NCBI GenBank assembly: GCA_904063045.1 | Contig: CAJFCJ010000025.1 | Location: 868,001 to 932,000 of the forward strand | Source: Dimorphilus gyrociliatus | Taxonomy: Eukaryota; Animalia; Annelida | Length of the DNA stretch: 64,000 nt | Reading direction: 5' to 3' | Shown: positions 35,259 through 44,688 of the stretch, one piece after another | Position numbering within the stretch: the stretch's first letter is position 1 | Layout: the number at the start of each line of letters is the position of its first letter | Program-made: the position numbers and the translations under genes | The notes under the pieces: model-generated | Seen by the model: only the letters and a program-made list of their open reading frames with translations | Told to the model about the DNA's origin: nothing | Databases searched by the model: none

Positions 35259-37315
35259 ATGACAGAAGCGGCATCAGACGACTCAAAGAATTATATTTAT
35301 ATATGTGTCAGCGTATTAATAATATGTATAATAATTATTGTAGGATTAATTGGTAAGTTAAGAATTAGTTAAGTAATTAATTTTTATTAATATTCTATCA
35401 TAATTTTATTATTAAATATTTAAAAAATGGAAGAAATATACTTAATTATTTTAATATATAGGCTTATAATACTTATAAACTGTTTATTACAGTATTTATT
35501 AACTAAATATTTTCTCTTTTTCCTCTTTCTTCGGCTTCTTCTTCTTCTTCTTCTTTGACTTTTAAAATAGGAAACATTCTGGTTATAATTGTTATTCAAA
35601 AAATGAAGAGAAAACTACAAACCTCCTGCAATTATTTGATTATGAACTTGTCAGTTTGTGATTTACTTTTCGTATCAATAGTTTTACCATTTTCGGCTTA
35701 TACTTACATAATTCAACATTGGAATTTATCATGGGTACTTTGTCAATTCTTAGGCTTTTTTAGCTATATGCTTACAGGTAAGAGAATTTTTAATAAATTA
35801 AATAACGTAATTAATTGAGTTATATATACATATATCCTAAATATGTTCATATATACTGTATATAATATATATAATTTATATAAATATATATATATAACTC
35901 AAGGTGACTAACGACCTTGAATGCCCCATGTCAAATTAGTGAAAACTCAAAAGTTTATTTAATGTAACTGTAAACGTCACGTAGAGATTTGGAACACCAT
36001 AACAGAGGAGAACGGAAAGAATATCCATTTTCTTTACACAAACTAAGCTTTTGTAACGGAATAGCTTTCCAATAATTTTTTTATGTAAATTAAAGTTTCC
36101 AAATTGGTTTACAGTTTACTGTATAACTATAAATATTCAACCTTGATTTCTATGCATAAATAAGATAAGTAGCTATGTATGTATATGTTACTACTTTCAT
36201 TTCATCCTCCGTTATACCCTATATGAAATAATTTATTAATCATTTACTTAATCAAGGTCGTTAGAAGCACGTATTTCCCGAGTTGATCGCCTTTAATTAA
36301 GCTCTTTTATACAAAATTTCAAGTATAAAGGAGACCATCAAAGGACTCTCTCTTTTAATATTGTCTTAACCTTTCATAGATTTTTAATATATGTATAAAA
36401 AATGAAATACGTTCCAAGATATTAATCTCCTCTCTTTTCTCTCTCGCTCACTCTCTTCTACTTCTTCTTCTTCGATCTTTAGGTACAACGTTAATCAACA
36501 TAACGCTTATTGCCTGGACTAGATATAATTTGGTAACATGTCAGAAAATAATATTACCGAAGACCGGCTGGAAAATTCGATTGGCTATTGCTTCTTCTTG
36601 GGTGTTACCCGCTTTATGCCTACTTCCCCCTTTAACGAGAGTTTGGGGGCGATTTGATTACGTTCCTATTTTGGTTACTTGTAATCTACTATTGGATAAG
36701 GATTCGAAATCTTTTAAATTAGTTCTTTTAGTAACCAGAGCAGTTATACCGAGTATTCTCTGTGCCATTTGTTATACTTCAATCTACAAAACAACACTAA
36801 AGTAACAATAAACTTAATTTATTTCAAAATAGATACAAAACAAATATTAAGGCCTATCTAAATGATTCTAGGTTGTTTAAATATATTTTATCATTCTCCT
36901 TGTATACTTTCAAAATAATTAGTCTGGAGACAATACTTTAATTAATTGGTTCATTAGTCTTAATTAAGTTTATTATTACTACCGAAGAGCTAAATTTACA
37001 ATGATAAAAAAAGATGGAAGAAGATCGGATAAGAGGGAAATATATCTAACTAGAATGACTGGAGCAATTTTTGCCGTTTTTACTATTTCGTATTTCCCTT
37101 GTACAATTACAAGCGCAATCGACTGGCAAAAACCTCTCAGTAAACATTTTCACATGTTTTGCGCCTTAACGGTCTACATAGGAAGTGCTATTAACCCTAT
37201 TTTATATGGTCTACTCAATCCAACGTTTAAGAGGGCTTACAAGAATTTGTTGCGGAAGAATTATGGTTTGACAGAAACTAAAACAGATAAAGCACCACTA
37301 ACAGATAGGTGGTGA
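35259..37315 (+). CDS. Class A GPCR of the moody/Tre1/GPR84 (melatonin-receptor-like) group; exons 35259-35352, 35571-35777, 36483-36801, 36988-37315 (315 aa)
   Basis: TM1 GLIGNILV, TM2 NLSVCDLLF, TM3 IAWTRY, ECL2 WGRFDY...VTC, ICL3/TM6 REIYLTRMTGAIFAVFTISYFP, TM7 SAINPILYGLLNPTFKRAY, which resemble moody/Tre1 signatures. The last acceptor (AAG at 36985-36987) is the only phase-2-compatible one I found and is weak. Confidence 0.82.
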
Positions 37316-37881: not shown

Positions 37882-40800
37882 TTATTTCTTTTTCGTTTTG
37901 GTGTCCTCTTCACTCGATTCTTCTTCGCTGGATTCCTCTTCGCTAGATTCTTCTTCGCTAGACTCTTCTTCGCTACTAGATTCCTTTGTTTCCTTCTTAC
38001 TGGAGGCTTCTTTTTTTGTTTCCTATTTTAGTCGTTTATAAAAGTTTTAAAGAAATAAGGAAAAGATATTATTTAGGTCAGAGTTTATCATACTTTTTTA
38101 TCCTCTTCTTCTTCGCTCGATTCTTCCTCTTCGCTTGATTCTTCTTCTTCGCTGCTAGACTTCTCTACTTTTTTCGCCTTAGTTTTATCATCTTTTTCAT
38201 CTTCAGAAGATTCTTCATCGCTTTCAGACTCTTCACTGCTACTTTCTTCTTTGCTCTCTGATTTAATGGCTGATGTATCCTTGTTATCTTTTCCTTTCTG
38301 AAATTCGTACATATGTTACATATTAGCCCTAACATATACTGTATAAAATATAATGTTTTTCAAGGAAAAGATAGAATTTAACTAACCTTTTCATCAATCT
38401 TTTCTTCCTCAGACTCTGAGTCTGATTCCTCTGAACTCTCCTCGCTTTCACTTTCATTTTTCTGAAGATATAAATGAAACTATTATATGCTGTATAATTA
38501 TTTCTATTGTATATATAATTATATATTGTAATTAACCCTATCAATTTCTTTCTTTTTTTCTTTAGGATCATCTTCACTTTCAGAACTTTCCTCGGAGCTT
38601 TCCTCTTCTTCCTCAGAACTGCTTTCTTTAACTACCGTTTTCTTCTTTTCCTGTAAATTTGCCATAGATTCTTTTTATGCTTGATGCGAAAAAAATTTTA
38701 ATGATGTAGGCTTATTGATTCTCTATCAATTTATAATAAGTCAGGTGTGCTAATTAAGGAATCATTTTAGTCTTAAACAATTTTCAGGGGAAAACTTTTG
38801 GCAGAACGAATGAAAATCTAATTTTAAATTAATGAAAAATTGCTACAAAGTGGAAACAACACTATAACTAATTATAGTTTCTTAATAAATACCTCTTTTA
38901 CTACTGCTGCTTTTTCGTCTTCACTTTCTTCTTCACTTTCCTCGCTGGATTCCTCTGAAGATTCTTTCTTAACTGGTTTCTTCTTTTCTTCTTCGGATTC
39001 TTCTGACGAAGACTCTTCTGTAGATTCCTCTTCAGACTCGTCAGAACTCTCCTGTTTCTTAGCTGGCTTAGTCTACAGAGAATAATATTTGAGTTATTTC
39101 TACGATCTATACAAAAAGCGTTACCTGTGCTTCGGTTTTAGTCTTTTCTTCCTCTTCCTCGCTTGATTCTTCTTCGCTGGACTCTTCTTCCGACGAAGAC
39201 GATTCTTTTCCTTTCCTCCCTTCTTTAACGTTTTTCGGCGAAGACTATCATGTTTACATACAATAACATATACTATGATGAACAATTATATAGATAATTT
39301 ACTTTTTTCTTGTCTTGTTCACTTTCTGCACTCTCTTCACTGCTTTCTTCGGAAGACTCTTCCTCCGAGGATGTTTCTTTTCTCTTTTCTACTGTTTTAA
39401 TCTCATTCTTTTTGGTCTAAAAAAATTATAAAGGGATTATGTGACAATCTTTTTCCGATAAGTAGGTACACAAGTTTAATACAATTAACTAACTTTAGTT
39501 TTCTCCTCTTCATCTTCACTCTCTTCACTCGTTTCACTCTCTTCTTCAGAGGAAGATTCTTTTTTCTTTTCCTTCTTTTTAGTTTCTTCCTTTTTAGCCT
39601 AAAATATTCAATTTAAAGGGCAAAATTATTTCTGATGTATATCTATAATTGGATGATTGCACTTTAGATTTACTGTCTTCATCTTCACTTTCCTCACTGC
39701 TTTCTTCCTCTTCTGAAGATTCTTCCTCGGAAGAAGACTCTTTTTTCTTTTCCTTCGTTTTAGAACCGTCCCTCTTGGTCTAAGATAATTTGTGAAAATG
39801 ATTTTTTGATTTACTAAAACTATACTATATTCTATAAAAGAATGAACTAACTTTAGACTTTTTCTCTTTCTCTTCCTCAGAAGAAGACTCTTTTTTACTC
39901 CTCGTCTTTTTGGCATCTTTTTTCTATACGGAAGAATAATGTAGAAAATTAATTAGGTTAAAAAAATAAAGGAAAAGAGGGGGAGACTAATGCTTTTAAG
40001 GAGATATCCTCATAAAGTGTATAAAAGAAAAGATAATACTATATTGGAGGGTGATGTTACAAATATCAAATATAAGAATTTTTATTAATAATTTCCTTTA
40101 ATTTTTTGTTATCTTCACTCTCTTCGCTCTCTTCGCTTTCTGAACTCTCTTCGGTACTTCCACTTTCTTCGCTTTCACTTTCTGACGATTTACTTGATTT
40201 CTTCTCTTGTTTTTTATCTTTCTTAGGCTTCTTCTGTCGACAAAGCGAATATAAAGTACTGGTATCCTTAATAAGTTTCCATGAAACTTTTGCTCGTATA
40301 TATGAATATGAGTGCACAGTACTTACAGAACTCTTCTTTTTAGCATCACTCTCGTCACTCTCGTCACTTTCTTCGCTTTCCTCACTCTCTTCGGATTCTG
40401 AGTCTTTATCCTTCTTTTCTTTCTTCTTTTTCTTTTTCTAAAAACGCATTTTTTCACTAGATTGATAAATTTATGAAATTTTACTTTGTCCTTTTCTTCT
40501 TCAGTTTCCTCTTCTTCACTAGAGCTAATTTCAGTAGACTCTTCAGATTCTTCAGATGTTTCCTCCTCTTCCGCTTTCTTTTTCGCTTTCTTTTTCTTTT
40601 TCTACAAGAAAGAGCTAATCGTAAGCTAATTAGAATTTGGAGTATGTCTCTTAATAACCTTTTCAGACTCATCTGATTTTGTGGAGCCTGACTCTGGTAT
40701 AGGTTTACTTTTTTTCTTTTTCTTTTTCTTCTTTTTTATGTGAAAAATGAGAAACTAAAGTTATTATTACTGCGGAAAAAAGAGAAGATTTGGTGGTTTG

Positions 40801-41953
40801 TATATACTTTTTCTGAACTGGACGCCGATTTCACAGAATCAGTTTCATCAGAGGATGACTCCTCTTCTTCGCTGCTTTTCTTGCTCTTCTTTTTCTTTTT
40901 TTTCTAAAAACACATAGAGAAAGAAAATAAAGAGCTTTTTTATTTTTTTTTTGTTTTTGTATTGAGTTATTAACTGTAAATTGTCCGTAATAGCCTATGT
41001 TAAAACATCTGGAAATGACTCGCAAGTACTTTGAAAAGCGCCATCTTTATTTTAGACAAGAAGGTAGAAAGTTTATAAATAGTATATTAAAGTGTTGACT
41101 GTTATAGATATGTACATTTGTAAAATGTAGCTCATACATCTTAAATACAGATATTATAAGGGTAAGAACCTTTTTAGGCGACTGTGAGGCATCGCTTCCA
41201 GATTTCGAATCACCGGATTTTGCATTTGAATCACTGCTATCTTCTTCCTTATTACGAGTAAAATAAATAGAACAATGAGAAGAGAGGCAGAGAAAAATTA
41301 AAGTTGCAAGTAAACTTACAGATGAACTCGAACTACTCGAACTACTCGAACTACTATCTGATATTGTCGCTAAATATTCTACTTCATCTTCTGGTATTTC
41401 TATTTTTAGATGAGAAAATAGCTTCTCCGTCTCGAGAGCATCAAAGAAAGCATCATAATCCTTTAAGAAAGAAAAACGTATTAGTCTTATCAATCTTTAT
41501 CTATAACCAAGAGCTAATTAAATACTCCAATGTAATCTTCATCGTTAAAAACTTGAGGAGGAGCTGTACTTTTACCCTCAGTCGTTGCTTTTTCGATCAT
41601 TCTATCCTTATCGGCTTTTCTCCTGGGATTTGATATATCAATAACTTCATGTTCAATTCCCTTTGATTCCAAGGTCCAGACAATATGATCTTGTTTCTTC
41701 TTTAGCTATTTTATCAGGAAGAGAAAAGGGTCACTAATTAAGCGCAAAATACGATTATTTCTGTATAGTTTTCACAATAATCAATTGAATTCGTCTTTGT
41801 AGTATTTTAAACAAAAGAAAAGAGTCTCTTTTATTATTTCTTTGTGTGTATGTTTCTCTTCTATGTACTAAAAATAAGAATAAATGTTTTGTATATTAAA
41901 TAGCCTACCTGCCAACCACCAGGATTGCTGGAAATATATATCTGTAGAACCAT
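37882..41953 (-). CDS. SH3BGR: SH3BGR-family (thioredoxin-fold) protein with a very long Lys/Ser/Glu-rich C-terminal extension; 19 coding exons, about 739 aa
   Basis: Exons 41953-41909, 41705-41526 and 41460-41320 give MVLQIYISSNPGGWQ-LKKKQDHIVWTLESKGIEHEVIDIS...APPQVFNDEDYIG-DYDAFFDALETEKLFSHL, the SH3BGR signature (cf. MVIRVY..S..IKKKQ...PPQIFN...GDYDAFFEA). Tail exons: 41247-41170, 40903-40808, 40730-40659, 40601-40485, 40437-40327, 40233-40096, 39923-39852, 39779-39663, 39598-39494, 39416-39303, 39244-39125, 39072-38893, 38650-38537, 38461-38387, 38297-38094, 38022-37882. All are multiples of 3 and phase 0. The donor after 40096 is non-canonical. The symbol denotes the family. Confidence 0.85.
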
Positions 41954-43632: not shown

Positions 43633-44688
43633 TTAAAGGTCTCTATAAACTTTTTCTAAGGAATTACGCTGTTGTAATTTAACAAAAACAATTGCTATAG
43701 AAACTGGAATCTCCCTAGGCCAATATGATAAAATAACTTCCTGTTCACTAATTTCTCTGACAGCATCAAAGTACATAAAAAGAATACAAGCCTTTAAGGG
43801 GATTGAAAGATTTACATTAGTTAAAATATTCTTATATGGTTAATTAATTAGAAAAAATATCAACCTGATAAGATGCTATAACAACGAGTAAGTGCCAAAT
43901 AGCGTGAAGATAAGGAAATCTAATTTGTAACCAAAATTCACAAACGAATTTATCCAACAGCCATACAGACACGGCAAATAACCAAGTTAAAAGACATCTT
44001 TTACCTAAGTCGTTTACTTTTTTAATGCTGCATCTGTAACATAAGAAATATGAAAAAGGTGTGTACACAGGACTAAAAAAGAGAAGCCTCTTAAGGGGCT
44101 GACCTCACTTTTTCAATTGTAAGACAAGGACAACTGTTACGGGAATAGCTACAGCTAAAAGTACAAAGGCATTTATTGCCGGATAAGCGAAAGCTAGAAT
44201 AGAAATTTTTACTCCAGCTGCACCTAAAAAATTTCTAAAATGAGTTTTCTTCATGTTTTTGCAAGGCCAAGGCATAAATTCTCTTGGCCACCATAACGCT
44301 GCAGCCGCTATAAGAACCCATAGTATTGCAATCTCGTCTAATAGTTGACCGGCTAAACTGAGTGTTGCGTGAAAATAGACGCTTCCAATCCCAACTACAG
44401 CCAATAACAACCAAACAACATATACGCCAGATGTCATCTTATTTGCATATTGCCTCGAGAGGAGGCAAAGTATTGGAGGGTAGATAAAAAAGAGAGCGTT
44501 ACTTATCTATTCAATTGAGGAATATTTAAAATGAAGCGTTTTCCCAATAAAGAATAAAGCTTATGATATCATTAAAAGTGACTCACTGTGTTAAAAAATT
44601 CAGCGATATATATGGAAATTTTAAAGTTTTCCTCGCACCAATCCACTTTAGACGTCTGATATTTGAACGATTCAAAAATATTTTCCAT
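43633..44688 (-). CDS. ACER2: Alkaline ceramidase (CREST superfamily; ACER1/ACER2 clade, Drosophila brainwashing-like); exons 44688-44587, 44506-44109, 44033-43865, 43791-43633 (275 aa)
   Basis: VDWCEENF...IAEFFNTISN N-terminal motif, GIGSVYFHATLS and FPYLHAIWH Zn-binding motifs, C-terminal YFDA...YWP. All introns are GT-AG and phase-compatible. The symbol marks the closest vertebrate family member, not proven 1:1 orthology. Confidence 0.93.

Follow-up and report, generated by a model that had tools for sequence, protein, structure and literature searches.

Proteins of the SH3BGR/SH3BGRL family are actin pointed-end cappers and have been renamed TPEC; SH3BGRL2 occupies the filament's pointed end within the junctional complex of red cells, the family acts on actin in the cytoplasm, and the role of its variable C-terminal extensions is an open point (PMC12827327). 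In yeast Aip5 a thioredoxin-fold actin binder is joined to a disordered region of 1131 residues, which drives higher-order assembly and condensation (PMC6838200). We analyzed a gene of the annelid Dimorphilus gyrociliatus in which an SH3BGR head is followed by a long tail of alternating lysine and acidic serine blocks. The gene lies on the minus strand of a stretch of 64,000 nucleotides (nt) (assembly GCA_904063045.1, contig CAJFCJ010000025.1, positions 868,001 to 932,000 of the forward strand), which we call the window and whose numbering is used throughout. A previous sequence-only reading of this DNA had described the gene as a possibly undescribed chimera of an SH3BGR domain and a Nopp140/Treacle-like tail.

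The reading that we favour, with a probability of roughly 0.6, is that of an actin pointed-end-binding head carrying a polyampholyte tail tunable by phosphorylation, a function that we infer.

One gene from head to tail

The coding sequence (CDS) runs on the minus strand from 41953, where the ATG stands, to 37885 and is followed by a TAA stop at 37882-37884; its 19 exons encode 739 amino acids (aa). There is an in-frame stop directly upstream of the ATG of exon 1. Exons 1-3 (122 aa) comprise the SH3BGR head and a serine run, and exons 4-19 (16 exons, 617 aa) comprise the tail. All 19 exons are multiples of 3 nt, and all 18 introns are in phase 0 and 47-266 nt long. These intron sizes agree with the median intron of 66 bp in the published D. 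gyrociliatus genome, which is 73.8 Mb in size and lacks operons and trans-splicing (PMC7854359). The assembly analyzed here is also compact, with 77.9 Mb in 349 contigs.

The entire CDS was covered by one spliced contig of 3314 nt from transcriptome run X2 (2017), which aligned to the minus strand from 42100 to 37875 with zero mismatches. The contig is unbroken from 42100 to 41909 and is next joined to 41705, the splice between exons 1 and 2; the two head-to-tail junctions, 41320/41247 and 41170/40903, are both spliced in phase 0 within it. Junctions not printed in the contig alignment were checked by arithmetic on the positions of the contig record. From ATG to stop the record measures 2217 nt, which is equal to the exon model, and its positions 1412-1885 match the summed length of exons 4-8 (474 nt), which set the ambiguous acceptor of exon 6 at 40730. 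Further, small contigs of X1, a marine metatranscriptome from a second study, span the junctions of exon 2 with exon 3 and of exon 15 with exon 16. Since a single zero-mismatch spliced contig spans the whole CDS, head exons and tail exons are one expressed gene with one transcript, as far as assembled contigs, which fall short of proof for a single molecule, can establish it.

The sequence-only reading had named transcripts from separate genes as the result that would overturn it; what we found was one contig spliced across head and tail, and both the position and the content of its proposed gene held up (PF04908 match, 617-aa tail, 19 exons). The opposite model, in which head exons and tail exons are two adjacent genes joined by an artefact, draws on that limit of assembled contigs and on the 898 nt by which the X2 contig reaches past 42100, which may mean that neighbouring transcripts were merged. 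Against it stand the phase-0 splices at all junctions of one contig, including those from head to tail, and the lack of either a start codon or a promoter gap between the two parts. The orthologue in a related species has the same layout, and two environmental sequences (L008 and P0097, described below) each have head and tail on one transcript-like sequence. Such a merged gene model is disfavoured, and we regard it as highly improbable.

The head was recognised from exon 2 alone, which matched Pfam PF04908 with 41.8 bits (cut-off 21, E 1.3e-10) over profile positions 17-78 of 99. A whole-genome scan with PF04908 recovered the locus, and exon 2 aligned end to end with the SH3BGRL2 chains 2ct6_A and 8iah_Z, the latter from the spectrin-actin junction structure 8IAH. 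The motifs that SH3BGR and SH3BGRL proteins share, KKKQ in helix 1, PPQ-I/V-F and G-DYD-x-FF, are all found in exons 2 and 3. By these matches the protein belongs to the SH3BGR family (PF04908). Its thioredoxin-like head has about 105 residues, and strand 1 of the fold, not a signal peptide, forms the N-terminus. As in the rest of the family there is no CxxC; the predicted 739-aa protein has no cysteine at all, and a redox role is therefore excluded for it. The label of a redox-fold adaptor given by the sequence-only reading is thus outdated, in view of the missing cysteine and of the capping activity of the family (PMC12827327).

The fold was modelled on one homologue of the subfamily, P0019, and the head of the window was assessed exon by exon. 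The modelled head of P0019 (residues 1-130) had a mean predicted local distance difference test score (pLDDT) of 74 and matched SH3BGRL 1u6t and, with a template modelling (TM) score of 0.89 by target and a root-mean-square deviation of 2.0, 8iah_Z.

All exons lie on the minus strand. Exon 1 (41909..41953, 15 aa) holds the start codon and the first strand of the head and is 98% identical in DNA to its counterpart in the related species (contig L004). Exon 2 (41526..41705, 60 aa) encodes the core of the thioredoxin-like head with the KKKQ and PPQVF motifs, and exon 3 (41320..41460, 47 aa) the last head helix (DYDAFF), the subfamily motif around P-E-D-E-V-E-Y and a run of 12 serines. The tail begins with exon 4 (41170..41247, 26 aa), an acidic/serine linker with a KK end (62% aa identity to L004 exon 4), and continues with exon 5 (40808..40903, 32 aa), a lysine block and an acidic-serine block with 75% aa identity to L004 exon 5. 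Exon 6 (40659..40730, 24 aa), with its acceptor set as above, has a lysine block and a Ser/Thr/acidic stretch. A lysine block and an acidic-serine block make up each of exons 7 (40485..40601, 39 aa; contig splice and L004 comparison), 8 (40327..40437, 37 aa; contig splice) and 9 (40096..40233, 46 aa; GA donor), and exon 10 (39852..39923, 24 aa; contig splice) is a short K/Ser/Glu block. Exons 11 (39663..39779, 39 aa), 12 (39494..39598, 35 aa) and 13 (39303..39416, 38 aa) are the first, second and third copies in a tandem triplication of exon plus intron, seen by DNA self-alignment.

Contig splices also define exon 14 (39125..39244, 40 aa), with a basic stretch and an acidic-serine block, exon 16 (38537..38650, 38 aa), with one block pair, and exon 17 (38387..38461, 25 aa), an acidic-serine block. 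Exon 15 (38893..39072, 60 aa) has two block pairs, and its junction with exon 16 is the one seen also in X1. Two block pairs are found again in exon 18 (38094..38297, 68 aa), which has 67% aa identity to L004 exon 16. The last exon, exon 19 (37882..38022, 46 aa and TAA), consists of S-S-E-E-E repeats and a K-rich C-terminus; Tandem Repeats Finder (TRF) reported a 15-nt unit in 4.6 copies.

Intron ends were GT-AG in 17 of 18 introns. The exception is the donor of exon 9 (intron 9, 40094-40096, minus strand, AAG followed by GAAATT), where the genome has GA and yet the transcript contig is spliced; the joint 39923/40096 has ends CT..TC in the X2 alignment, and L004 has GT at the corresponding donor. 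The GA either belongs to a true GA-AG intron or reflects a polymorphism or an error of the assembly. Intron 3 (41248-41319) is 72 nt long, in frame and free of stops, and its retention would add a hydrophobic stretch of 24 residues between head and tail. We rejected retention as an isoform, as the X2 contig splices this intron out and the orthologous L004 intron has 89 nt and a stop; the open frame is probably due to chance.

Upstream of the gene, on the same strand, lies an alkaline ceramidase gene (43844-44437, minus strand). The C-terminal exon of a rhodopsin-type G protein-coupled receptor (GPCR) gene (37001-37315, plus strand) runs toward the gene from its 3' side, the two stops being about 570 nt apart. 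With its extension past 42100, the X2 contig has at least about 1045 nt 5' of the ATG. It may represent a 5' leader of great length or non-coding exons located upstream, or the contig may overlap the ceramidase gene at that gene's 3' end.

Composition and growth of the tail

The tail is built of some 15 units, each a lysine block followed by an acidic serine block. Its 617 residues are 31.8% E, 24.6% S, 23.2% K and 5.8% D (D+E 37.6%), while hydrophobic residues (AVILMFWYC) make up 5.2%, with zero aromatics and zero cysteines. We counted 17 acidic-serine runs at a threshold of at least 8 residues (each 8-28 residues) and 96 S/T-x-x-D/E sites, 81 of which were S-x-x-E. The picture given by the sequence-only reading, of a tail rich in S-x-x-E, poor in hydrophobic residues and not preceded by a signal peptide, was therefore accurate. 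The charge-patterning analysis that it had called for gave a kappa-type segregation of 0.32-0.36, above all shuffles (0.12-0.16, with maxima of 0.17 and 0.23 for the two blob sizes). In the per-exon charge maps most tail exons run from a basic block through an acidic-serine block to a lysine end. The tail is intrinsically disordered. A Pfam scan of ten tail exons returned zero families at E up to 1, with composition filters that may mask weak matches.

A composition of this kind might also suit a cytoplasmic buffer of high capacity for Ca2+ or polycations, similar to phosvitin or calsequestrin, in which clusters of phosphoserine and Glu would keep ions close to the contractile apparatus. In vertebrates SH3BGR is a protein of muscle, and the content of acidic residues and serine together with the 17 acidic-serine runs would fit such a role. 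However, the interleaved lysine blocks (23% K) would cancel much of the acidic charge, dedicated Ca2+ buffers have no such blocks, and the protein has no signal peptide for a lumenal store. We consider an ion buffer very unlikely.

Part of the array can be traced in the DNA. A self-alignment of 328 nt with 66% identity pairs introns 10-12 with introns 11-13 and spans the exon-plus-intron units 11, 12 and 13. Therefore, the array arose at least partly by tandem genomic duplication of phase-0 exons. TRF further detected short tandem arrays with a period of 9-18 within several tail exons, so some slippage took place as well. Serine in the tail is drawn from all six codons.

We compared the tail with Nopp140 and Treacle, with which it shares alternating basic and acidic-serine blocks rich in casein kinase 2 (CK2) sites. 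The true Nopp140 of this genome is a separate gene: the only SRP40_C match (G000:C1:2021406-2021681) lies on another contig, directly downstream of a single repeat exon of at least 399 aa (positions 147-1343 of locus L007, G000:C1:2019906-2023181). This exon consists of near-identical units of 37 aa with K/A/P/T-rich basic parts and D/S-rich acidic parts; the near-identity of the units is a sign of recent homogenisation. There were 17 acidic-serine runs in the tail and 14 in the Nopp140 exon, 15.6 and 15.0 CK2-type sites per 100 aa, respectively, and K%, S% and charge blockiness were close, so that the Nopp140-like block pattern proposed earlier was borne out in numbers. The two differ in that the basic blocks of the tail are almost pure K or K/E, and in that the Nopp140 repeats sit in one exon, whereas the tail is spread over 16. 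TCOF1 has roughly one repeat per exon, as the tail does.

The domains that accompany such repeats were not found: the Pfam scan gave no SRP40_C (PF05022) in the last exons of the gene, the N-terminus is the SH3BGR head and not LisH, and the ten scanned tail exons had no Treacle repeat (PF03546), weak matches to which may be hidden by the composition filters. Judged by these features, the protein is Nopp140-like in charge pattern and is not a member of the Nopp140 or Treacle families, the central repeats being a shared property and not evidence of membership. The resemblance lies in a possible way of working, not in ancestry. Capture of exons from Nopp140 was considered and rejected, as both the repeat sequence and the gene structure differ and the self-alignment explains part of the array.

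The same comparison gives its weight to a nuclear or nucleolar factor that would work as Nopp140 does, with lysine blocks for import, phosphorylated acidic-serine blocks that attach to basic proteins of the nucleus or promote condensation in the nucleolus, and a head whose role is unrelated to actin. The tail equals the Nopp140 repeat exon in K%, S%, acidic-serine runs and CK2-site density, the protein has 29 matches resembling classical import signals, and a long-tailed insect orthologue (that of Eurosta) was automatically named HMGN5-like. On the other side, LisH and SRP40_C were not found and no Pfam family matched the ten tail exons scanned, a complete Nopp140 gene is already present at another locus, and the family of the head acts on actin in the cytoplasm (PMC12827327). 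We regard a nuclear factor as unlikely, though the least unlikely of these alternatives.

Conservation and relatives of the gene

Exon 2, used as the query of an all-library HMMER search, yielded 93 matches, chiefly exon-sized fragments of environmental contigs. The best was P0001, an unspliced gene call from a related species with 83% identity. A 12-kb contig of that species (L004) keeps the gene order ceramidase, SH3BGR-tail gene, GPCR. The orthologue on it was modelled with 18 exons, all in phase 0 and all with GT-AG introns, and encodes 713 aa; its tail of 596 aa has 32.4% E, 24.0% S and 22.7% K, near the values of the window tail. One-to-one partners, with 51-100% aa identity, exist between the two genes for exons 1-9 and for the last two large exons, and all differences in exon length are multiples of 3. 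The middle exons were turned over: there are 16 tail exons in the window and 15 in L004, and exons 10-17 of the window are without clear one-to-one partners. The introns could be aligned only over the first 38 nt of intron 1.

Between the two species synonymous divergence (dS) of the head was about 0.75 and its nonsynonymous divergence (dN) 0.11, while dN of the tail was 0.18. The Nei-Gojobori dS of the tail was invalid and was left unused, as the two-fold K and E codons brought the proportion of synonymous differences (pS) to 0.91. Since frame, length and composition were kept while the introns diverged past alignment, the comparison indicates that selection maintains the frame, length, composition and pattern of the tail, its exact sequence being more loosely constrained.

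These data also bear on the view that the tail is a largely neutral, functionless low-complexity expansion that arose through slippage in replication and through duplication of exons. The tandem arrays of period 9-18 within several exons and the turnover of the middle exons (16 against 15 tail exons, with no clear partners for exons 10-17) are what it would lead one to expect. However, frame, phase and length (617 and 596 aa) were kept and composition stayed within about 1-2 percentage points while introns diverged past alignment, tail dN lies well under the synonymous divergence of the head, serine uses all six codons, and the same design is found in more distant sequences. Neutral expansion is thus disfavoured, and we consider it rather improbable.

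Two of the more distant sequences are environmental. P0097, a protein of 260 aa from the Tara marine metatranscriptome catalogue, has an SH3BGR head and alternating lysine and acidic-serine blocks, and ends inside the tail. L008, a JGI environmental contig of 2270 nt, encodes a head, one in-frame TAA, 421 further residues in the same frame and, after a frameshift, 145 more residues of the block pattern up to the contig end. The TAA of L008 lies at 609-611 and the frameshift at about 1834-1874. The TAA could reflect stop read-through, with a short and a long form of the protein, or an error of assembly; the standard Gln codons of the head make a genetic code of the ciliate type unlikely.

A motif directly after the head, around P-x-D-E-V-E-Y, is common to the window, L004, P0097, L008, P0019, L009 and several exon-sized environmental fragments, and was not found in the mollusc or fly sequences of our alignment. 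In a tree of the 60-residue region of exon 2, the window, L004, L008, P0097 and environmental fragments formed a clade (support 85/97), separate from insect Sh3beta, from molluscs and fish and from the worm's own short paralogues. To judge from these sequences, the design of lysine and acidic-serine blocks is not unique to D. gyrociliatus, being present also in the related species, in the JGI contig L008 and in the Tara protein P0097.

The genome has three SH3BGR loci in all. The other two, L001 (G000:C3) and L003 (G000:C19), encode SH3BGRL-like proteins that are short (about 95-105 aa) and tailless, their heads being split over three exons in the same way, and they have very long branches in the head tree. 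An environmental protein of 324 aa (P0033, ENA) has three tandem SH3BGR heads and no tail, a further unusual architecture of the family.

Vertebrate SH3BGR and insect Sh3beta also carry an acidic disordered C-terminal extension after the head. The named long-tailed proteins that we retrieved were from Dreissena (344 aa), Pinctada (323 aa, partial), Glossina (Sh3beta, 401 aa), Anopheles (469 aa) and Eurosta (539 aa). Their insect and mollusc tails are acidic, with 4-19% K and 4-12% S, and have no K runs, zero acidic-serine runs of at least 8 residues and 1.5-4.9 CK2-type sites per 100 aa, compared with 15.6 in the window tail. The latter is set apart from the family by its length (617 aa against about 434 aa in Eurosta, the longest among the named relatives retrieved), by 23% K in runs, 25% S and 17 acidic-serine runs, and by the subfamily-specific motif after the head.

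These relatives changed our view of the earlier claim of a possibly undescribed chimeric architecture. Its first part stands, in that a literature search found no paper describing an SH3BGR head with a block-charged tail. The chimera is not supported: long acidic-tailed SH3BGR orthologues are common, with 401-539 aa in insect Sh3beta and 323-344 aa in molluscs, and nothing points to capture from Nopp140 or Treacle. Since tail-bearing SH3BGR proteins are widespread and the tail grew partly by tandem exon duplication, a head-tail fusion is unlikely.

Other searches for relatives yielded less. Two long matches of the exon 2 search, P0022 and P0090, were rejected as long-tailed relatives, being unrelated repeats. 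A word-index protein search with the head region of Dreissena P0086 returned only itself, and one with the 421-aa tail of L008 scored nothing among 8000 candidates, probably owing to composition correction. The word-index search with head alignment A1 gave mostly insects and retrieved no named long-tailed protein of annelids or rotifers, which does not imply absence from annotated proteomes. Across the word-index searches and the exon 2 search, no named annelid orthologue was retrieved. Atlas look-ups gave leads only, among them an SH3BGR cluster of 464 aa, most frequent in Rotifera.

Possible function of the tailed protein

For the favoured reading of an actin-binding head with a tunable tail, we propose the following mechanism. 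By homology, the SH3BGR head would bind an actin filament at its pointed end and anchor the tail, about 220 nm in contour length, there. Phosphorylation of the roughly 96 predicted CK2-type sites would strongly shift the net charge of the tail, and may alter the attraction of its blocks to each other or to other charged partners. The tail could thus be an electrostatic scaffold, a spacer or a former of condensates held at filament ends. It grew, at least in part, by tandem duplication of phase-0 exons, with selection keeping composition and charge pattern over exact sequence. Actin binding, tail phosphorylation and the role as scaffold, spacer or condensate former are all inferred.

Yeast Aip5 is one of the closest known systems. 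Both proteins have a small thioredoxin-fold domain without CxxC, which in Aip5 binds actin, and a very long low-complexity disordered region. Further, the head model of P0019 matched the yeast/Candida Aip5 structures 6m4c and 6abs (TM 0.70-0.81 by target) at 17-21% sequence identity. In contrast to the tail described here, the disordered region of Aip5 is N-terminal (residues 1-1131) and is not a block copolymer of lysine and acidic-serine blocks. The likeness does not imply that the two architectures share a common ancestor.

Several observations weigh against the favoured reading. The 29 import-like matches in the protein, of the form K-K/R-x-K/R, would equally fit nuclear import and point away from a purely cytoskeletal role. 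The evidence for the fold comes from a homologue just 46-54% identical over exon 2, and the head is just about 33-38% identical to vertebrate SH3BGRL proteins. The head tree was built on 63 columns, and the support of its key node is moderate.

A more specific form of the same reading is doubtful and is offered tentatively. The gene would belong to an undescribed conserved invertebrate subfamily of pointed-end cappers with a tail of about 220 nm in contour length. Phosphorylation of the CK2 type would let this tail alternate between collapse or self-association and an extended state, and make it a tunable electrostatic brush, ruler or condensate seed at pointed ends, comparable in role to the disordered region of yeast Aip5 but with a Nopp140-like build.

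In summary, we describe an extreme, regular and conserved form of the SH3BGR C-terminal extension, in a family that was only recently shown to cap pointed ends. This long extension is conserved in an animal whose genome is very compact and tends to lose sequence that lies idle. As a natural test case, it could reveal how a long phospho-tunable polyampholyte behaves once it is tethered to the end of a filament, and it clearly exemplifies the independent origin of a Nopp140-like charge pattern through exon duplication. Even if the tail had no function, it would still be a well-documented case of conservation of a disordered region at the level of composition.

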